This document shows, in pieces, positions 5,952-64,000 of a DNA stretch of 64,000 nucleotides. Position numbers and translations under genes: made by a program. The stretch comes from Rebecca billardiae RCC1528 (taxonomy: Eukaryota; Protista; Haptophyta). Location of the stretch: NCBI GenBank assembly GCA_965240325.2, contig OZ251238.1, forward strand, positions 1,240,001-1,304,000, given 5' to 3'. The notes beneath the pieces are model-generated. The model ran no database searches, was not told where the DNA came from, and worked only from the letters and a program-made list of their open reading frames with translations. Numbering within the stretch: position 1 is the stretch's first letter; each line of letters opens with the position of its first letter.

Positions 5952-6653
5952 TCAGTCCGAGTCTGATCCGCGCCGCTTGCTCTTCTTGGGTGCGCGCTCG
6001 TCGTCCGAGTCGGGGCCGTCGGCGTCGCGCTCGGCGCGGCGGCGCCGGCGCTCCTCCTTGCGCGCGGCCTTCTCCTCCTTTCGCCGTCGACGCTCCTCCT
6101 CACGCGCCGCGCGCTCGAGCTCTCGCTCGGCGGCCGCCTGCTGCTCCGCCAGGGCGCGTTCCTCCTCCTCACGGCGCTGCTGGCGCTCGTGCTTCTTTTG
6201 AGCCTGCAGCTCGCGGTCGAAAGCAGAGCCCACCACATGCGTCTCGCCGATCCGCAGCGCGCGCCGCATCTGCGCGTCCTCCGCCTGCTTCGCCGCGGCC
6301 TGCTGATGCGTCTCGTCTGGCCGGCCGGCGGGCGGCTTGCGCGCACCAGCGGGCTGCGCGATAAGCGCCGAGCGGCGCTTCTCGAGACGGGCGTCGATCT
6401 CTTCGGCGCTGAGTGGCGGCTCTCGCCGCTCGAGCTCCTCGCGCAGCTCGCACAGCTTCACCTCCACCTGCCGCTTGCGCTCGTGCTCGAGCATCTCCTC
6501 GTTGGGCTTGCGCGGCGCGATCGGGCCGGCGCCCGGCGCCCACGGCTTCGCCTCAGAGCGCGAGCGGCGCGCGGGCACGTGCGACAGGTTGCGCTGCACG
6601 TAGCCATTCGTGCCCGAGCCGCGGACGGTCTGCAGTCCGATGCCGTTGTACAT
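5952..6653 (-). CDS. CWC21: Pre-mRNA splicing factor CWC21 (cwf21/SRRM2 N-terminal family), 233 aa
   Basis: Starts with the diagnostic MYNGIGLQTVRGSGTNGYVQRNL. Cwf21 domain 'EMLEHERKRQVEVK' and 'GSAFDRELQ'. ATG is at 6653; the upstream ORF extension runs into a transposon. Confidence 0.93.
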   Translation of the reverse strand: MYNGIGLQTVRGSGTNGYVQRNLSHVPARRSRSEAKPWAPGAGPIAPRKPNEEMLEHERKRQVEVKLCELREELERREPPLSAEEIDARLEKRRSALIAQPAGARKPPAGRPDETHQQAAAKQAEDAQMRRALRIGETHVVGSAFDRELQAQKKHERQQRREEEERALAEQQAAAERELERAAREEERRRRKEEKAARKEERRRRRAERDADGPDSDDERAPKKSKRRGSDSD

Positions 6654-6746: not shown

Positions 6747-7852
6747 CAAGGGTAGTAAGGGTGAGCAACTCCGCTGGCGACAGCCGCGAAGGTCGGCAGC
6801 CCTCTCGGTTGCCGCGAGCGGAGCGGAGCGAGTGCTATCAGCGGCGGAGGGCGCTGAGGCCGCGCACGGCGTGAGGCGCGGCGTCGGCCGAGTCGGTCCG
6901 CGGAGGATGCGCGGCGCTCGGCCCGCTGCGCAGCGGCAGTGCGCCTCACTTTGCCCCGAGCACCGTCCTCCGCGTCGCCTCCTTCCCGCCTTGGAGCAGC
7001 ACGCATGTGCGCGCCGCCACCTTGAAGGCGGCACGGGCTTGCTCAGACGACCGCGCGCGCGTGGCGCGCGACTTGGTCGGCTGCGCGCGCGCGCCGCCGC
7101 GGTGCAAGGTAGCGCCGCCGCATGCGCGCGCCGTGCCCGCGCGAGCCTTTGCTCACGGCCATCTCATGAGCGTAGTGCTCGCTTGTCTGCTTGCTCTCAC
7201 GAATGATTTGCTGTGCCTCACGCTGGCACTCGTCGGGTCGATCAGCGAGGTGTTGAGTGACATTGGATACCCAGGACGAAGGCCTAGTCTTGTCTATTCC
7301 TTCTCAGCACGAATGCAAGTGGACGCTAAGGCTCCGCATCGATGGTACCAACACTCACGCCGCTGTCTTTTCCAGCTTCCCGTCAGTCCGCAAGTCGGAT
7401 GCCAAGCAGCATTCGACATGTGTGTGAGGTCGCACTCAGGTCCGCGCACACGCTCTCGCGCTGGCACGGCGCGCGCATGCGGCGGCGCTACCTTGCACCG
7501 CGGCGGCGCGCGCGCGCAGCCGACCAAGTCGCGCGCCACGCGCGCGCGGTCGTCTGAGCAAGCCCGTGCCGCCTTCAAGGTGGCGGCGCGCACATGCGTG
7601 CTGCTCCAAGGCGGGAAGGAGGCGACGCGGAGGACGGCGCTCGGGGCAAAGTGAGGCGCACTGCCGCTGCGCAGCGTGCCGAGCGCCGCGCATCCTCCGC
7701 GGACCGACTCGGCCGACGCCGCGCCTCACGCCGTGCGCGGCCTCAGCGCCCTCCGCCGCTGATAGCACTCGCTCCGCTCCGCTCGCGGCAAACAGAGGGC
7801 TGCCGACCTTCGCGGCTGTCGCCAGCGGAGTTGCTCACCCTTACTACCCTTG
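6747..7852. mobile_element. Foldback-type non-autonomous transposon (P/Galileo-like) with ~398-bp TIRs
   Basis: Near-identical inverted arms 6747-7145 and 7455-7852 with a 309-bp spacer. Termini CAAGGGTAGTAAGGG...CCCTTACTACCCTTG. 7-bp TSD tccctgc at 6740-6746 and 7853-7859. Confidence 0.85.
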
Positions 7853-38088: not shown

Positions 38089-39012
38089 TCACGCGGGGAG
38101 CGGGACCCAGGGTGACGGCTCGGACCGGCGGTCCTCGACGCGGCAGACGAGGTCGAGCACGTCGGTGACAAACTGCGGGCGCAGCGACAGCTGCGCGGCG
38201 AGGTCGGCGGAGAAGTTGACCTCGAGGAGCAGCGGCTGCGGCACAGGCACGCCGTGCACGGCGCGTTCGCCCGGCGGTGCCGTGCCGTCCGCGCGTGCGT
38301 GTGTGTCGAGCAGCACGTCGACGCCGTACAGCCCAAAGCACCGGCCTGCGCGCCACGCGCTGTCGCGCACGCTCGCGCACAGCGTGCGGCCGAGGGCGGC
38401 GAGCGGCCCGTCGCGGATCGCGCCGACCACCGCGTCGGCCCACGCGTCCGCGTGCGCGTTCGTACGCGCGCCCGCCTGCGCGCGCTCGGCGAACGCCTCG
38501 CGCAGCAGCGCGCGCCCCTCGCGCACCTCCTGCGCTGCGGCCGAGCGGTACTTGTGCACGGGCAGGTGCGCGTCCTGCGCCCACAGCGGCGCCTCGCGCC
38601 CCGCGGGGTCGAACAGCGGCACGCGCGCGACGCGCGCGTAGAAGGTGGCGTGCACGTGCGCGCGCAGCGGCTCGAGCGCGCTCACGCACACGTACAGCCG
38701 CAGGTCCACCTTCCGAGAGCCGACGCTCAGCGGCGCGCGCGCGCACGCGGACGCGACGAGCGGCGGCGCGAGCGGGTGGCGCGCCGCCGCGAGCGCGCAC
38801 GCCAGGCTGCGCGTGAGCAGTACGCCGCGGCTGCGCGAGGACGCCCATGGCCGCAGCACCCACGCGCGCGCGAGCTCTGACGACGCCGACGCCGCCGCAA
38901 GCGCCGCCTCGGCGTGCGAGCCGCCCTCCGCGCCCTCCGCGCCGCCCTCCGCGCCGCCGCCCTGGGCCGCGCCCTCGCACGCCGGCGCCGCCGCTACCGC
39001 CGCCGCCGCTGC

Positions 39013-39072
<60 letters not shown>

Positions 39073-40275
39073 GTACTCGTCGAGCTGCGTCGCCACGTTC
39101 CACGTGCGCGGCAGCCAGTCGGGGCACTCGGCGGGTGCGCACGCGTGCGCGGCGCGCACGGCGTCGCACAGCAGCGCCTTCGACGTGAGCACCGACTCGT
39201 TCGGGAACTGGCTGAGCAGCGCGTGCCCCAGCCCGCGCGCGCTGAAGTCGTGCACGCGCGAGCCCAGCCAGCGCACGTGCGCGCGCGCGGGCTGAGCGCA
39301 CGCCTCGTACACGCACGGGGACGGGGGCGGCGGCGGAGCGGCGGCGGGCGCGGCGGCGGCCGGCGGGGCGGGCGCCGAGCTCGCCGCCGCGGGCGCCGCC
39401 GCGGGCGCCAGCGCCGCGCCCACCTGCGGGCAGTCCGTGTGCACGCGCACGACGCGCACGCCCGCGCCCGCGCACCCGCCGCCGCCCGCCAGCGCCGGCA
39501 GCGCCGCCTCCGCCGCCGCGCGCTCCAGCGGCGCGTTCGCCGAGACCCAGCCGAGGAAGACCTGGCGGGCGGTGCGCGGCGGCGCGGGCGGCGGCGCGCG
39601 CGCCCCCGCCGCACGGCCGTGCCCCGCCTCTCGCCCGCCGCCCGCCGCGCCGAGCAGCGCGCGCGCGCGCTCGGCCGCGGCCGCGCGCTCGGCCGAGTCT
39701 GCCCAGCGCGCCTCGCCCAGCCCGAGCCACGGCAGGTCGTGGGCGAGCGCGTCGGCGGGGAGGGCGGACTCGGCGCGGGCCGAGTAGTCGCGCGTCACCT
39801 CCACCCAGCCCGCCGCGCCCGCCGCGCCGCCGTGCGCCGCCGCGCCCGCCGCGCACCACAGCGCGCACACGGCGCGCGGCGCGCGCGCGCCGCCCTCGGC
39901 CGCCAGCCACAGCGCGCGGCAACGGAAGGACGGGCGCGCCGAGTGCCGCGCGCGCGCGCCGACCGGATCGAGCAGCGCGAAGAGACACGCCTCGTCCGCC
40001 TCGGCGCGCGCGTCCGCCGGCACGAGCGCCGCCCAGTCCACGTCGCGCTCGGCGCCCGCGCGCGCGCGCACCTCGCACAGGGTGCCGCTCCACTCGGCGC
40101 GCCGCGCGCGCACGAGGCCGGCCGCGCAGTCCGCCGCGCGCACGCGCACGCGCCCATCCGACGTGGTGCTGAAGCAGTCGCCCGCCTCGCCCTCCGCCCA
40201 CACCACGCGCGTCTCTGCCGGCAGCTCGAGCGCCAAGAGCAGCCGCTGCGTCTCGGCCGCCATCTTGGCTGCCAT
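38089..40275 (-). CDS. Tubulin-tyrosine ligase-like protein, TTLL12-like
   Basis: 'QFPNESVLTSKALL', 'WLPRTWN', 'KVDLRLYV', 'YGVDVLL', 'PLLLEVNFSAD'. N-terminal 'EVTRDY' resembles the TTLL12 SET-like region. Confidence 0.8.
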
Positions 40276-40476
40276 CGTGGCGGCGCAAAAGCTCGAGGCG
40301 GTGAGGCGGTCAAGAGGCGGCCCGCGATTCGGAGCTTCGCCGTCTCGCCGACGCCATCCTCGCCGGCCGGACGCCGACGCGCCGTTCAGCAGCGCGCCAT
40401 CAGCGCGCCAGGCTGCAGACTGCAACGGAAGCCAGCCAGCCCAGCCGCGAGCGTCATCACCTCTCATCGCGCTCGC

Positions 40477-42093
40477 ATGGCCCTCGGCACCTCGCGCATC
40501 TGGGCTGCACGCGCGGCCCCGCTGCTCGTGCTCGCGCTCGCGTGCGTGCCCGCGCCGCTCCTCGCCCTGCCGCTCGGCGATGCGGCGGCTGCGCGCTCTG
40601 CGCACACGCACGTGCGAGCGCGCGCCCTGCTCGCGGCGGCCGCGGCTGACGAGCTTCACGACGGCACGGCTTCACCGCCGTGCTACGGCGGCGCGTGCGC
40701 CACGCATGCGACGGCTGCTTCCACGCCCCAAGACGGCGGCGCGATGACACCCGACAACACCACTGAGCACGCGGCTGCGCCTGCAACGCCGCCGCCGCCC
40801 AATCGCACGGCGCGCGAGCCGAGCGCCCCTGCGGCTGCAGACGAGACGCTGCCGACGGAGGGCGATGCGGGCGAGCCCGAGGCGCACGACGAGCGGCTGG
40901 AGACGGCGCTGTGCCTCCAGCGCCTAGGCGGGGAGGACAAGCACTTCCTCTTCTCGCCAGAGACGGTGCTCGAGAAGGTCGGGCTTGCGGCGGTGGTGCT
41001 CCTGGCCGTGGTGGGCGCGGCGTTAATGGCGGGGCTGGTGGCCAGGGCGTATCGCCGCGGCGGTTGGAAGCCCTCCAAGAAGGCGGTGATGATGCTCGGC
41101 GGCGCGCTGCTCGCAACCACAGACGGCGTGACGGACGTGCTGCTTGCGACCGAGTGGCTCCGGTGCGGCCACCACGTCTGGGCGGCGATCGCGCTCACCT
41201 GCGTCGGGCTGAACACGCTGGCGGCGCTCGTCTTCGGCGTGGATGACGGCTACATCACTGGCCACGGCGCGAGCTGCAGCGAGCGCGCCGGGGCGGTCTT
41301 GTCGAGCGTGCTGCAGCTTGGCGCCGTCCACGCGGTGGTGCTGCGCGTTTGGCGCGACCAGCACGTCGACCCTGACCAGGCAACGGATCTGCTCCGTCTC
41401 AAGCAGTTGGAGGTGGGGCTCGAGGCGGCCCCGCAGGTGTTCCTGCAGGGGTACGTGCTGCTGTGGTTGGGTGCGGAGCGCGCGTCGGCGCTGTCGTGGG
41501 TCTCGCTCGCTGTCTCCGTCGTTGGCATGGGCCTCGTGCTCGGCGACGTCTATGCGGACACGATGCGCATGAAAAACTATCCAGGCGCACGCGAGGACAG
41601 CGTAGAGGACGGCGGCGGCGCGCGACGGGCAGCGCGCGCGCTCGGTCCGTTCGGCGTAGTGAGCCGCGCGCTGCCGATCGCACTTTTCGCCTGCGTGTTC
41701 GGCAATTGGCTCGCACTGCCGCTGTTCGGCGCGTTCACCGTGCTCGTCATCCTCGCACGCTTCGCGCGAAGGAATGATGAGGGGTGTGGGGCGTGGGCGG
41801 GTGCCGTGTTTACCACCCTCCTCTTCTACGCGGCCACACCCTTTGTGCAGCTAGAGGACATCACCAGTGCGCGGGGCGAGGCGCGCATCGTCGCGTGGAC
41901 GGCGGCGGTCGAGCTCGCGCTCGGCGCCGCCGCGCTGGGCGCGCCGTCGCGCTGGCGCGCAGCGCAGCCCACCGGCTTGCTGGTGGGCGCCGCGTTTCTG
42001 TTGGGCGTGTGCTGGCTGGGCCGGCTGGGCGCAGCTGCCGTGCTGCTGCGCGCCAAGGCGAAGCGGTTCAAGGAGAGGCAGGTGCTGCTCTGA
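40477..42093 (+). CDS. XK-related (Xkr scramblase family) membrane protein with N-terminal signal/extracellular extension, 538 aa
   Basis: XK-family motifs 'DGVTDVLLA' and 'LEVGLEAAPQVFLQGY', with multiple TM helices. Confidence 0.72.
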   Translation: MALGTSRIWAARAAPLLVLALACVPAPLLALPLGDAAAARSAHTHVRARALLAAAAADELHDGTASPPCYGGACATHATAASTPQDGGAMTPDNTTEHAAAPATPPPPNRTAREPSAPAAADETLPTEGDAGEPEAHDERLETALCLQRLGGEDKHFLFSPETVLEKVGLAAVVLLAVVGAALMAGLVARAYRRGGWKPSKKAVMMLGGALLATTDGVTDVLLATEWLRCGHHVWAAIALTCVGLNTLAALVFGVDDGYITGHGASCSERAGAVLSSVLQLGAVHAVVLRVWRDQHVDPDQATDLLRLKQLEVGLEAAPQVFLQGYVLLWLGAERASALSWVSLAVSVVGMGLVLGDVYADTMRMKNYPGAREDSVEDGGGARRAARALGPFGVVSRALPIALFACVFGNWLALPLFGAFTVLVILARFARRNDEGCGAWAGAVFTTLLFYAATPFVQLEDITSARGEARIVAWTAAVELALGAAALGAPSRWRAAQPTGLLVGAAFLLGVCWLGRLGAAAVLLRAKAKRFKERQVLL

Positions 42094-43450: not shown

Positions 43451-44215
43451 CCCAAGACGTCATGGTAAGATGACTATGCGTTTTGCCGCTGCGCCACCAG
43501 AGTCGACTCTGGTGGCGCAGCGGCAATACAACGAAGCGCTGCGCCGCCAGGGTCCACGCTGGTGGCGCAGCGGTAAAACGCTTCATCATCATACCACCAA
43601 CGTTCACCGCGCAGGCATGGCCAGCAAGGTGGGCAAGATACACCTGCTTGGCCGAATTGCTGGCGACGTCACGCTCGGAACCGTGTGTGGTAAGATGACG
43701 AAGCGTTTTACCGCTGCGCCACCAGAGTCGACTCTGGTGGCGCAGCGGTAAAACGCTTCGTCATCTTACGACTCTGGTGGCGCAGCGGTAAAACGCTTCG
43801 TCATCTTACCATGACGTCCTGGGTTCGAATCCGCTGCGGTGCGCTTCTTTCACTCTTTCACAGCAGCCGCTGCGGCTTTCGTGTCTCGCAGGAGGGTCGC
43901 CCACGACCAGGGATTCCGGACACATTTCCGAATGTCCGGCCCCCGGGCGGCTCCCAGGGTCGGCTCTCCCCGGATTCCCTCCCAGGGGGCCCCGCCAGAG
44001 GGGCATGGGACGCGGAGCCAACCGCGAGAACAAACCGTACCCGGCAGGCGACCGGCCCCACACCCAGGGGGGTGTGGCTCAGAGTTGCAGCGGCAAATTG
44101 GCACCGCGCGCGGATGAGACCCAGTACGTTATGGTAAGATGACGAAGCGTTTTACCGCTGCGCCACCAGAGTCGACTCTGGTGGCGCAGCGGTAAAACGC
44201 TTCGTCATCTTACCA
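43451..44215. repeat. Array of tRNA-like inverted termini joined through long palindromes
   Basis: 42-bp unit gactctggtggcgcagcggtaaaacgcttcgtcatcttacca. Perfect palindromes at 44132-44215 (84 bp) and 43690-43769 (80 bp), decayed ones centred at 43504/5 and 43554/5. Pol III A box at 43778-43788 and B box at 43822-43832. Confidence 0.9.
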
Positions 44216-44300
44216 GTGTGGCCAATTATGGCGGATGAGACCACCGGGGCGAGCAGAGCGGGGCGTGCTCAACATCGGACCGGGCACCGGACCCCCTCAC

Positions 44301-44850
44301 CAAGGGGATTCGGGGTGTACAACAGCACGTCCAGTTGGGCTGCAGCTGGAGCTTGGGTCCAAAAGCTTCCCGCGGCGCAGCGGCACTCGCCGCCGCCGCC
44401 GCCGTCGATGGGCGGTTGTGGCGCGCACGGCGTGAGCCGCTGCGGGCGCTGAGATGCTCGCGACGGCGGCGCTCCCGGCGACGCTGCTGTAGTAGGCCAC
44501 TACCCTCCTCTCTGCTTCGCGCGCGTCGATCGTCGTCGCCGTCTCCGCGCCTGCGACCATCACGCACGCAAGCGCCGCACCGCCCTGCAGCCGGGCCAAT
44601 TTCAGCCGTGACTGCGAATTTGCGTCGCGACCTTGTCGGCCCAGCGCGCGAGGCGCGTGCGGGCGTGGTAGGGCCAGTGTGGTCGCGCGCCATGCCGCCT
44701 CAAGTAAGCCAATCAGAGCGTACAGCAGGGAACGGGGCACGTGTGTTTGGCCGCTTGGACTGTGTTCAAGCAATGCACGGGCTATCGTCGAGGCGATCTC
44801 GAGGCACTCGGTCAAAACGTCAGTTCAAGCGCTCACACGACCTGGGCGAG
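44301..44850 (+). mobile_element. Partial, diverged copy of the foldback element at 62924 (left arm plus part of spacer)
   Basis: Begins caagggga and aligns with 62924-~63470. No right arm is visible. Confidence 0.8.
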
Positions 44851-45552: not shown

Positions 45553-47721
45553 TCAAGTGGCCTCCTTCAGGTGCATGTCCACGTCGTACCGCGCTCTGCG
45601 CTCTGGATCCGAGAGCACCTCGAACGCGGCGGCGATCGCCTTGAAGCGCTCCTCGGCCTCGATGCGCGCGGGCTCGCCCGCGTGCGCCTGGCGATCCGGG
45701 TGGTGGCGCAGCGCGAGGACGTGGTACGCCCGACGAAGCTCGGCGTCGCTAGCGCCCACTGGCACCCCCAGCGTGGCATACAGCCCGGCGGTCTCGCGCA
45801 GCCGCAGCGCCCGCTCCGCTGCGTGCAGCCCGCGCCGCGCCGCGGTGTGCGCCGGGTCGAGCGCGAGGGCCTGCCTGTAGTGCGCCGCCGCTTGCGCGTG
45901 CTCGGCGAGCTGAGCGGCGCAGAGCCCCGCACGCAGGTGCAGCGCCTTGCGCGCGGCAGCGCCCTCGCCGGCGGCGGCACGGCGCGCGCTCGCGCGCAGC
46001 CCGGCCTCGCACGCCGCGAGCCCGGCGCGGTAGTCGCGCCCATCCGCATGGACGGCCGCCACGCGCGCCTGGAGCCCCGCCTCGGTCGCCCCGCCGGGCT
46101 CGCACGCGCGGAGCGCGTCCTCTAGGGCGGCGAGCGCCGCGGCGCGCGCGTCGTCGTCGGTGAGCGCGGCCTCGAGCTCGCGCGCGCGCGCGTCGGCCGC
46201 GTCGAGCGCGAGCACGCGCTCGCACGCATGCGCAAGGCGCGCGAGGCCGCGCGTGTCCTCCGCCTCGCGCTGTGACATGGCGTCGTCGTCGCAGGCCTCC
46301 TTCGCCGCGCCGTCCTCCTCCTCGTCGTCGCCGTCGCTCCACGCCTCGGCGCGGCCGAGCGGAGGCTGGGCGCGCGCGAGCGCGAGCGCCTGGCTGCGCG
46401 GGCCGTCGCGCGCGAGGCAGAGAAGCCGCTCGGCGCGCAACGCCGGGCCGCGCGCGCCGCGCTCGCGCGCGCGCACGCACGCGAGCGCCGCCTCGTCGAG
46501 CTCGGCGGCGGCGCAGAGCGCGCGCGCGTGCGCGGCCGCCAGCCGGCCGTCGAGCGGCGCGCTCGCGAGCAGCAGCTCGGCGTGCGCGCGCACGTCGGCA
46601 AAGGCAGCGGCGCGCGCGGCGTCGGTGGGCGCGGCGTCGGCGTCGTCGGCCATCACCGCGACCTCGGCGGAGCGCTCCTCGAGCTGGCGCGCCTCGTCGA
46701 GCAGGCCGAGCGCCGCGCTGCTCGAGGGCGACGCGTCGAGCGCGCGCAGGCAGAAGGCGCGCGCGCGCGCGTACCGGCCGGCGCGCAGCGCGCACAGCGC
46801 GGCGCGCAGGTTGCCCTTGAGGTAGGCGGGCTGGAGCCGCGCGGCGCGCCACGCGTCGCGCGCGGCGCTCCGGTGCCGCCCGAGCGCGAGGTACGCCGCC
46901 GCGCGGTTCGACAGGCACACCGCGTCGGCGGGCGCCTCTGCGAGCGCGTGCGTGTACCACGCGACCGCCTGCCCAAACTCGCGCTCGCGGTACGCGCCGT
47001 TGGCGCGCGCGCGGCAGTGCTCGACGTACGCGCGGCCCTCGAGCGCGGGGGCGGCCGGGTCCGCGGCGGGCGTGGCCTGCGCGCCGCCGTGCCCCGCGCC
47101 CGCGCCCTCGCCCTCGCCGCAGTCGGGGCCGCCGCCGCCGCCGTCGTCCGCGCCGGCGTCGAGCTGCGCGGCGGCCGCGGCCGCCTCCGAGCCTCCGCCG
47201 GCCGGGTCGGCGCCGGCGGGCTGCGCGCGCTGCGCGGGCTCGGCGCTGCAGGCGAGCGCCGCTGCGGCCAGCTCCGCGCAGTCGGCCCGCGCCACGGCGT
47301 CCCCAGAGGCGTCGGCGCCCGCGGCGACGGCGGTGCGCAGCAGCTCGCGCAGCTGCACGTGCGCCGACCCGCGCGCGCGCACGCCGCGGAGGGCGCGCGC
47401 GCACACGGCGACGACGGCGTCCCAGTGGCCGAGCTCGGCGAGCGCCTGCGCCTGGCGGTAGAGCACCTTGGGCGGCGCGTCCGCGCCGTCGCCGCCGACC
47501 GACGCGCGCGCGGCGCGCTCGGCCGCCTCTGCGTCGCGCAGCGCGTCCGCCGCGCCGCCCGCGCGCAGCAGCGCGGCGGAGCGGTTGCACAGCAGGGCGA
47601 CGTGGTCGGGCTCGAGCGCGAGGGCGCGCGAGAAGTCGCGCACGGCGGCGCCGTACTCGGCCCGCGCGAACGACGCCGCGCCCGAGCGGCGGAGCTCGTC
47701 GACCGCCGTCGGTGCCGCCAT
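45553..47721 (-). CDS. TPR-repeat protein with C-terminal J-domain (DNAJC7-like co-chaperone), 722 aa
   Basis: TPR motifs (LLCNRSAA, CLSNRAAAY) and J-domain 'LYATLGV...RRAYHVLALRHHPDR...RFKAIAAAFEVLSDPERRARYD'. Confidence 0.88.
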   Translation of the reverse strand: MAAPTAVDELRRSGAASFARAEYGAAVRDFSRALALEPDHVALLCNRSAALLRAGGAADALRDAEAAERAARASVGGDGADAPPKVLYRQAQALAELGHWDAVVAVCARALRGVRARGSAHVQLRELLRTAVAAGADASGDAVARADCAELAAAALACSAEPAQRAQPAGADPAGGGSEAAAAAAQLDAGADDGGGGGPDCGEGEGAGAGHGGAQATPAADPAAPALEGRAYVEHCRARANGAYREREFGQAVAWYTHALAEAPADAVCLSNRAAAYLALGRHRSAARDAWRAARLQPAYLKGNLRAALCALRAGRYARARAFCLRALDASPSSSAALGLLDEARQLEERSAEVAVMADDADAAPTDAARAAAFADVRAHAELLLASAPLDGRLAAAHARALCAAAELDEAALACVRARERGARGPALRAERLLCLARDGPRSQALALARAQPPLGRAEAWSDGDDEEEDGAAKEACDDDAMSQREAEDTRGLARLAHACERVLALDAADARARELEAALTDDDARAAALAALEDALRACEPGGATEAGLQARVAAVHADGRDYRAGLAACEAGLRASARRAAAGEGAAARKALHLRAGLCAAQLAEHAQAAAHYRQALALDPAHTAARRGLHAAERALRLRETAGLYATLGVPVGASDAELRRAYHVLALRHHPDRQAHAGEPARIEAEERFKAIAAAFEVLSDPERRARYDVDMHLKEAT

Positions 47722-62923: not shown

Positions 62924-64000
62924 CAAGGGGAGTCAGGGTACAGCACGTCCAGTTGGGCTGCAGCTGGAGCTTGGGTCCAAAAGCTTCCCGCGGCGCAGCG
63001 GCACTCGCCGCCGCCGCCGCCGTCGAGGGGCGGTTGTGGCGCGCACGGCGTGAGCCGCTGCGGGCGCTGAGGTGCGCGCGACGGCGGCGCGCCCGGCGGC
63101 GCTGCTGTAGGAGGCCTCTGCCCTCCTCTCTGCCCCGCGCGCTTCGCTCGTCGTCGCCGTCTCCGCGCCTGCGACTCAGCGCGCACGCGAGCGCCGCACC
63201 GCCCGGCCGCCGGGGCAATCTCAGCCGTGACTGCGCATGTGCGTCGCGACCTGGTCGGCCCAGCGCGCGAGGCGCGTGTGGGCGAGGTAGGGCCAGTATG
63301 GGCGCGCGCCATGCCGCCTCTAGTAACCATCAGAGCGTACATCAGGAGACTGAGCACGCGTGTCTGGTTGGCCGCTTGGACTGTGTTCAAGCAATGCACG
63401 GGCCATCGTCGAGGCGATTTCGAGGCACTCAGTCAAAACGTCAGTTCCGCGCGCAGACGACCTGGACGAGAGCCACTGACGATGTATGTTTCGAACGATC
63501 ACAAAAGGCTCTGCAACTATGGCGTCTGTACGCCTACTGCCTCGATCGTGCACACTGACGTCTGCGCTTGGGTGCCACATGTTTGTCAACGTTGTCGACA
63601 GAGGTGCAAGGCCCGCGACATGCCCACCGGCGCAAGGTCGAGGCGGCATGGCGCGCGCCCATACTGGCCCTACCTCGCCCACACGCGCCTCGCGCGCTGG
63701 GCCGACCAGGTCGCGACGCACATGCGCAGTCACGGCTGAGATTGCCCCGGCGGCCGGGCGGTGCCGCGCTCGCGTGCGCGCTGAGTCGCAGGCGCGGAGA
63801 CGGCGACGACGAGCGAAGCGCGCGGGGCAGAGAGGAGGGCAGTGGCCTCCTACAGCAGCGCCGCCGGGCGCGCCGCCGTCGCGCGCACCTCAGCGCCCGC
63901 AGCGGCTCACGCCGTGCGCGCCACAACCGCCCCTCGACGGCGGCGGCGGCGGCGAGTGCCGCTGCGCCGCGGGAAGCTTTTGGACCCAAGCTCCAGCTGC
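62924..64000. mobile_element. Foldback-type non-autonomous transposon, second subfamily; right end just beyond the window
   Basis: Left arm 62924-63320 (397 bp, starts caaggggagtcagggt), spacer 63321-63639, near-identical inverted arm from 63640 to the window end. Confidence 0.85.

Follow-up and report, generated by a model that had tools for sequence, protein, structure and literature searches.

The window, a stretch of 64,000 nucleotides (C21:1240001-1304000) from a 72-Mb assembly of 41 contigs with roughly 70% G+C, contains two or three adjacent insertions of one small, non-coding family of mobile elements, the standard copy of which bears a perfect 84-bp palindrome at each end. We regard this family, with a probability of about 0.6, as a TRIMp3/Helenus-like non-autonomous element that is inserted by the integrase of an LTR retrotransposon. 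Exact 5-bp duplications at the element ends, empty sites, ends resembling those of a resident LTR family (R3), a chimeric insertion on C13 and the precedent of Helenus all argue for this reading. No prior description of a palindromic, tRNA-like terminal-repeat structure was found.

Anatomy of the insertions in the window

In the following, a denotes a 42-nt unit, a' its mirror image and U the segment 43770-44173 (404 bp). The features of the region are as follows.

43451..43504, minus strand: decayed older copy, consisting of b' (12 nt of tRNA-like extension) and the reverse 42-nt unit (a') with 3 mismatches
43505..43554, no strand: older copy, forward unit cut after about 22-25 nt and joined to a partly deleted reverse unit; collapsed interior between the decayed axes
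43555..43596, plus strand: older copy, forward unit whose end CATACCA is the right terminus of the old insertion
43683..43687, no strand: the 5-bp GTGTG that borders the young element on the left (target-site duplication)
43688..43729, minus strand: young element, outer left arm a' (mirror of the unit); the terminus begins TGGTAAG
43730..43769, plus strand: extra partial forward unit of 40 nt; counted as 42 nt, it has a C-to-G variant and shares GA with the next unit
43770..43811, plus strand: forward unit a, which includes box A (43778-43788) and begins at the palindrome axis, where Pol III would be expected to initiate
43812..43842, plus strand: b, in which the tRNA-like sequence continues and box B (43822-43832) is located; outside the terminal repeat
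43843..44100, plus strand: X, non-coding interior
44101..44131, minus strand: b', decayed mirror of b in which box B is lost
44132..44173, minus strand: inner right arm a' with TTTT at 44150-44153, a possible Pol III stop
44174..44215, plus strand: outer right arm a; the terminus ends CTTACCA
44216..44220, no strand: right copy of the target-site duplication GTGTG

The initial annotation had described the region as a concatemer of tRNA-like units joined head-to-head around a GTC|GAC axis, and the underlying repeats were recovered on reanalysis. With up to 3 mismatches allowed, the window has six occurrences of the 42-nt unit, as against 0 in 100 shuffles. The palindrome at 44132-44215 has arms of 42+42 nt that are 100% complementary around an axis at 44173/4, and the one at 43690-43769 is likewise perfect, the wider segment 43688-43771 having arms of 43+43 nt at 98% and its axis at 43729/30. 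Decayed head-to-head axes lie at 43504/5 (25-nt arms, 96%) and 43554/5, an extra direct copy of the unit starts at 43770, and the inverted ends of the segment 43770-44173, given earlier as about 72 bp, measure 73 nt at 90.5%.

The interpretation placed on these repeats changes, however, once the outer ends are considered. Since several loci in the genome consist of one 84-bp palindrome alone, the palindrome was taken as the unit and its outer ends were inspected. On this basis, no end-to-end junction is present at the GTC|GAC axis, which marks the middle of a terminal repeat of 84 bp, the termini of the element being TGGTAAG...CTTACCA (TG...CA). Being palindromic, the terminal repeat is a direct and an inverted repeat simultaneously. 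The earlier statement that neither bases nor a target-site duplication lie at the junctions thus holds for the axes, which have no spacer and no duplication because they are not element ends, whereas 5-bp duplications do occur at the outer TGG...CCA ends. What had been read as a concatemer comprises two or three neighbouring insertions and one internal 40-nt duplication.

The young copy spans 43688-44215 (528 bp) with GTGTG on both sides, and its a'a repeats at 43688-43771 and 44132-44215 are bounded by TGG...CCA. Older decayed remains, which may represent one or two events, lie 91 bp to the left at 43451-43596; they have kept the right terminus CATACCA and lost the left one. The suggestion of a non-autonomous mobile element with repeated insertion events of differing age is therefore borne out. 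The left repeat of the young copy contains the extra partial unit, which the right repeat does not, and the joint of this unit (43730-43769) is also found in an older copy on C19. Such an asymmetric end seems to be heritable, and textbook LTR replication would erase the asymmetry.

An open reading frame of 108 codons in the interior (43811-44137), rich in Arg, Pro and Gly, is frame-shifted in the C18 copy, and no conservation of it was observed between the family copies compared. The insertion site is intergenic, with an XK-related gene (plus strand) on one side and a TPR-DnaJ gene (minus strand) on the other; the neighbouring genes at 38089-42093 and 45553-47721 of the window are tubulin-tyrosine-ligase-like (minus), XK-related (plus) and single-exon TPR-DnaJ (minus). 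Next to the insertions, at about 44298-44826, is part of a fold-back MITE that is unrelated to them. As for the flanks of the young copy being old family sequence, the overall resemblance was not significant, and one exact 12-mer is common to both.

Distribution and forms of the family

When the genome was searched for an 81-nt probe, a 25-mer and a 14-mer, about 19 elements at 18 loci on 15 contigs were recovered, none of them coding; reversed-pattern controls gave zero. The palindromes are constant at the 18 loci and hence not peculiar to the window, a' being directly followed by a in almost every locus. The standard copy can be written as a'-a-b-X-b'-a'-a, or a' + U + a with U = a-b-X-b'-a', and has an interior of 320 bp. 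Besides this form, there are solo repeats (a'a, 84 bp), centre-deleted minis (42 bp on C38 and 33 bp at C11:968451), internally deleted copies (C5-b, C18-b and C22-a) and a 900-bp head-to-head dimer on C5 (a'-rc(U)-U-a) with a single duplication around the whole, which was inserted as one unit. Deletion derivatives, 33-124 bp long, have been reduced to the ends and the duplication. Long copies encoding a tyrosine recombinase, reverse transcriptase or HUH protein were looked for; no copy encodes any of these, and the largest is the 900-bp form.

Rearrangement joints fall exactly at position 1 of a in C22-a, C18-b, C1-b and the centre of the C5 dimer. As many joints coincide with this position, the axis behaves like a physical nucleic-acid end at some stage. 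To this extent, and with a changed meaning, one element of the first proposal is retained. The C5 form corresponds to the product expected if a single-stranded monomer were to fold back on its 3' palindrome and copy itself.

In identity to other copies, the U of the window ranges from 100% (C15 copy) and 98.5% (C5) to 83-93% for the remaining ones, indicating that activity has been both old and very recent. In old copies, each arm has acquired independent mutations. At 7 of the 18 loci at least two copies lie within 1.5 kb, which looks like local hopping or sequence-directed targeting, and the C19 cluster includes one abutted CCA|TGG tail-to-tail joint.

Searches of the genome for a partner with matching 25-nt or 14-nt ends returned only short copies of the family itself. 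The palindrome core has no match in metagenome and viral collections, and a 22-mer of the unit gave three matches only, to bacterial-looking coding stretches and by chance. No real tRNA genes occur near the copies, either in the window or in 34 loci.

Target-site duplications and empty sites

Perfect 5-bp duplications at the TGG...CCA ends were found for 11 of 19 copies, counting the C13 chimera with its boundaries redrawn, and 4 of 5 bases agree in two more. When the right 5-mer was shifted by 1-6 bases, 0-1 matches remained, and random pairing of flanks averages 0.15. The perfect duplications are:

window, 43688-44215: GTGTG
C11 copy: CGAGG
C1 copy: GTGTG
C5 dimer: GAATT
C5-b: GAGTC
C18-b: TGGCG
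C15 copy: AGCGA
C22 copy: CAGAT
C37 copy: CGCAC
C38 copy: CGCAC
C13 chimera: TAGAC

Solo repeats in C11, C1 and C37 also retain their target-site duplications.

Two of the insertions, the C5 dimer and C18-b, could be validated by paralogous empty sites in a dispersed repeat of roughly 500 bp, here called H, for which at least 89 candidate copies were counted in the genome. Uninterrupted copies of H occur on C18 (L037:4233-4691), C32 (L046:4215-4725) and C11 (L031:1539-2038), whereas the one on C5 (L035:4972-5260 and 6168-6397) is broken in two by the 900-bp element, each side of which has GAATT. Similarly, removal of C18-b together with one TGGCG restores, in an alignment, the H sequence of C32 and C5. 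It follows from these empty sites that whole palindrome-bounded units are inserted.

At least three family insertions lie in H, one in the middle of the repeat and two 14 bp apart near the end of different H copies; with three copies inside a repeat that makes up less than 0.1% of the genome, targeting must be strongly non-random. H itself has no Rfam match. A possible ending of H in unit-like sequence was considered and discarded, the resemblance not being significant against shuffles.

tRNA likeness and the candidate Pol III promoter

When the box A and box B consensus is applied, box A (TGGCGCAGCGG) is located at 43778-43788 and box B (GGTTCGAATCC) at 43822-43832, corresponding to unit positions 9-19 and 53-63, a tRNA-like spacing. 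Box A lies within the terminal repeat and box B 11 nt past its end. The tRNA likeness claimed in the initial annotation is nevertheless partial, for the arm receives no tRNA call from ARAGORN at default settings and no match to the Rfam tRNA model; at a relaxed threshold, ARAGORN reports a poor fold of Lys-CTT-like type, beginning one base away from the axis. As box B is kept in the left a-b alone, the element has a polarity. Judged from these motifs, the inner half of the left palindrome together with b would constitute a tRNA-derived Pol III promoter, with transcription expected to start at the axis, and the TTTT at 44150-44153 in the right a' is likely to be the Pol III stop. The predicted RNA (43770-44154) folds into a long panhandle (z = -8.6) with a recessed 3' end and a 20-nt 5' overhang.

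Relationship to LTR retrotransposons

The LTR-bearing sequences compared with the family are the following.

L039:1489-3821 (C22:852488-854820): R3 element, LTR - 1.1 kb - LTR, with LTRs of about 600-612 bp that are about 96% alike
L040:3880-4498: C13 chimera, 619 bp, an R3 LTR minus its last 29-30 bases fused to one 84-bp a'a palindrome
loci L047-L058: copia family A 3' LTR, a GAGGAGGAG tract, then TGTCGGGC...GTCTC(TC)A, about 450 bp
loci L047-L058: copia family B 3' LTR, a GGGTGGGGG tract, then TGTCAAGATCC...CCCTTTGACA, about 335 bp

R3 is a low-copy, non-autonomous LTR family with five loci, three of which lie no more than 371 bp from copies of the palindromic family. The C22 element has a TATTC duplication, confirmed by uninterrupted copies of the target repeat. 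The sense strand of R3 starts with TGGTAAGTTGG, in which 7 of 7 and 10 of 14 bases are as in the ends of the family. R3 contains an open reading frame of 454 aa with a coiled-coil-like stretch and Gly/Ala-rich repeats, for which no Pfam match was obtained. The C13 chimera is surrounded as a whole by the duplication TAGAC and was inserted as one unit. A palindrome is thus able to take the place of an LTR end in a unit bearing integrase-type insertion marks.

Copia elements are abundant and intact in the genome (133 RVT_2 matches, many in open frames near 2000 aa). In the two copia families whose 3' LTRs were read, these start with TGTC and end with CA and are preceded by G-rich tracts. These two are not obvious partners, as their TGTC starts differ from the TGGT of the family. 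The end of the family B LTR followed by TG-NNNN-CA occurs nowhere in the genome, and when multi-copy elements with TGGTAAGNTG after a G-rich tract were sought in the genome, two single matches came up. The near-palindrome TGACGTCC after the repeat was also considered as a feature of copia 5' ends and rejected, CATGACGTCA being only about 1.8-fold enriched and at the expected offset from no reverse-transcriptase match.

Proposed mode of propagation

According to the integrase reading, the element would parasitise LTR retrotransposons. Transcription by Pol III would begin at the palindrome axis and end at the TTTT of the right a', the RNA would presumably be reverse transcribed, and a retroviral-type integrase, probably one supplied by an LTR retrotransposon, would recognise the TG...CA ends common to the element and the resident LTR family and insert the DNA. 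The solos, minis, internal deletions and the head-to-head dimer could then have arisen by recombination between palindromes or by fold-back of a single-stranded palindrome.

Certain features of the element depart from a conventional LTR retrotransposon. There is no canonical primer-binding site after the left repeat, the sequence following CTTACCA being TGACGTCCTGGGTTCGAATCC, which is the sense strand of the tRNA-like arm and not the complement of a tRNA end. Nor does a polypurine tract directly precede the right repeat; the 20 nt before 44132 end in CCCAGTACGTTA, with a short GGATGAGA run 12 nt upstream. Moreover, TTTT would end a Pol III RNA before the repeat is copied again, so that standard LTR strand transfer could not regenerate the ends, and from a transcript starting at the dyad such transfer could not rebuild the palindromic repeat either. 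The position of box B outside the repeat also speaks against the integrase reading, as does the outcome of the end searches of the genome, in which no autonomous partner with the ends of the family was found.

A variant would be a 'hairpin-LTR' retroelement, in which Pol III would start at the dyad and the terminal palindrome would serve as a fold-back primer, with no tRNA primer or R-mediated transfer; head-to-head dimers would occasionally be made in the style of a rolling hairpin and inserted as units by integrase. We put this variant forward tentatively and consider it rather doubtful. If true, it would amount to a replication route undescribed for LTR-type elements.

If, on the other hand, the integrase reading is true, DNA whose two ends are identical and mirror-image can parasitise a retroviral-type integrase, and a palindromic terminal repeat, which textbook LTR replication is unable to regenerate, can incorporate a Pol III promoter. 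The ends might be copied by fold-back priming, by a template jump at the 5' end of the RNA or by a DNA route, and as the family is recently active and of low copy number, the question of end copying is then testable.

Alternative explanations

A fold-back or MITE-type DNA transposon would account for the family by a DDE transposase that binds the TGGTAAG ends and moves the element by cut-and-paste with a 5-bp stagger, the tRNA-like part being only the historical source of the inverted repeat. We think this somewhat unlikely, and still it stays a serious rival on account of the heritable asymmetry of the ends, the clustering of copies within 1.5 kb at 7 of the 18 loci and the C13 chimera, which gives the impression that a movable unit is defined by whichever two suitable ends enclose it. 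Such a transposon would also agree with the length of the terminal inverted repeats (at least 97 bp), with derivatives of 33-124 bp that have nothing but ends and duplication, and with a genome rich in fold-back elements. No copy exceeds 900 bp, however, no partner with even 14-nt ends was detected, and the combination of TG...CA ends with 5-bp duplications matches no DNA superfamily with such ends. Transib makes a 5-bp duplication as here, but its ends are of the CAC type and not TGGTAAG. The explanation also requires a coincidence, namely that tRNA position 1 coincides with the axis and that boxes A and B are both intact and oriented towards the interior. It further leaves the match of the ends to those of a bona fide LTR element aside, and insertion of the head-to-head dimer as a unit would be hard by cut-and-paste.

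The initial annotation had instead inclined to an element that forms circles or recombines at the axis, and a DIRS- or Crypton-type tyrosine recombinase or a protelomerase-like enzyme would, on such a model, join copies head-to-head without duplication and build arrays. Perfect axes without a spacer, the abutted CCA|TGG joint in the C19 cluster and the many rearrangement joints at the axis could be understood in this way, and DIRS, Crypton and protelomerase sites do share inverted repeats and perfect dyads with the family. Those systems, however, depend on a tyrosine recombinase or telomere resolvase and operate without target-site duplication, while here 5-bp duplications are present at the outer ends of 11 of the 19 copies, empty sites show the insertion of entire palindrome-bounded units, and neither a recombinase nor any other gene is present in any copy. 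The TG...CA ends with 5-bp duplications thus constitute evidence against mechanisms of the DIRS, Crypton or protelomerase type; the earlier proposal is contradicted by the duplications and by the lack of an associated gene, and we deem it highly improbable. Exceedingly unlikely is a fold-back assembly artefact, in which the palindromes would be chimeric long-read errors: perfect palindromes are a known class of artefact in long-read assemblies, but the structure recurs at 18 loci, spread over 15 contigs, where the flanks are unique and the duplications specific to the site, and the arms of its old copies have mutated independently.

Comparison with known elements

Helenus TRIMs have tRNA-like LTRs, make 5-bp duplications and leave solo LTRs (Kojima 2024, PMC10886601). 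The family resembles Helenus/TRIMp3 and also Cassandra, which is 5S-like, in being about 0.5 kb long and non-coding, and shares with Helenus/TRIMp3 the tRNA-derived box A and box B, the TG...CA ends, the 5-bp duplications and the solo terminal repeats that keep their duplication. Unlike any described LTR, however, its terminal repeat is a perfect palindrome, and only box A is inside this repeat, whereas the Helenus LTR holds the whole promoter. In addition, the family differs from Helenus/TRIMp3 in having neither a tRNA-complementary primer-binding site nor a polypurine tract, and in an interior that also has inverted ends. Cassandra forms multimer arrays (PMC7215508), and multimeric forms occur here as well, although the multimer of the family is head-to-head and not tandem.

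With fold-back elements and MITEs the family has in common long inverted ends, a short non-coding interior, deletion derivatives, a duplication of fixed length and local clustering. It differs from them in that no transposase-bearing relative was found, the ends match the first bases of an LTR, and the repeat is built from a putative Pol III promoter whose start would be the dyad. Like tRNA-derived SINEs, it has a tRNA-like head with promoter boxes and a boundary, here the axis, at tRNA position 1, but it lacks a LINE-type tail or A-rich end, both its ends are mirror-image arms, and its duplications are fixed at 5 bp and not variable.

In the fungal GalEa copia elements, a Conserved Hairpin Site replaces the primer-binding site (PMC5445492). 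A palindrome or hairpin across the end of the 5' repeat, where the tRNA site is expected, is a point of likeness, the anticodon-stem-like hairpin of the family spanning CTTACCA|TGACG, and so is the 5-bp duplication. GalEa is, however, autonomous, its palindrome is only 9-10 bp long and its LTRs are ordinary.

Parvoviruses replicate through rolling-hairpin intermediates. The C5 900-bp form, with mirror monomers between the usual outer arms, resembles such intermediates, as if a strand had primed itself on its 3' palindrome; the family differs in having no Rep/HUH gene and in showing integrase-type marks of integration.

Other repeats

Copies of the kind described here escape tRNA, SINE, LTR and MITE finders, and their perfect palindromes will probably be taken for errors of assembly. 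Several other repeats were noted in the course of the analysis. A solo repeat on C25 (L032:2930-3170) lies 9 bp past the end of another repeat, the last bases of which are ...TTAGTAAACTGTA; in place of a 5-bp duplication, the solo has on its two sides diverged direct copies of about 40 bp from the end of that repeat. The R3 element on C22 sits in the same short region of another copy of the TTAGTAAACTGTA-ended repeat.

Fold-back copies or arms unrelated to the family occur in the window at 44298-44826, 62940-63447, 63640-64000 and 6809-7791. One fold-back family with ends of the CAAGGGG type has 361-nt arms that are 99% complementary (62960-64000), and another has 337-nt arms at 6809-7791 with inverted homology extending into the flanks. 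A 12-bp palindrome, CATGACGTCATG, was observed in pairs exactly 444 bp apart at three loci (C12:1476611/1477055, C22:458584/459028 and C22:478343/478787), which suggests another small repeat family with palindromic landmarks.
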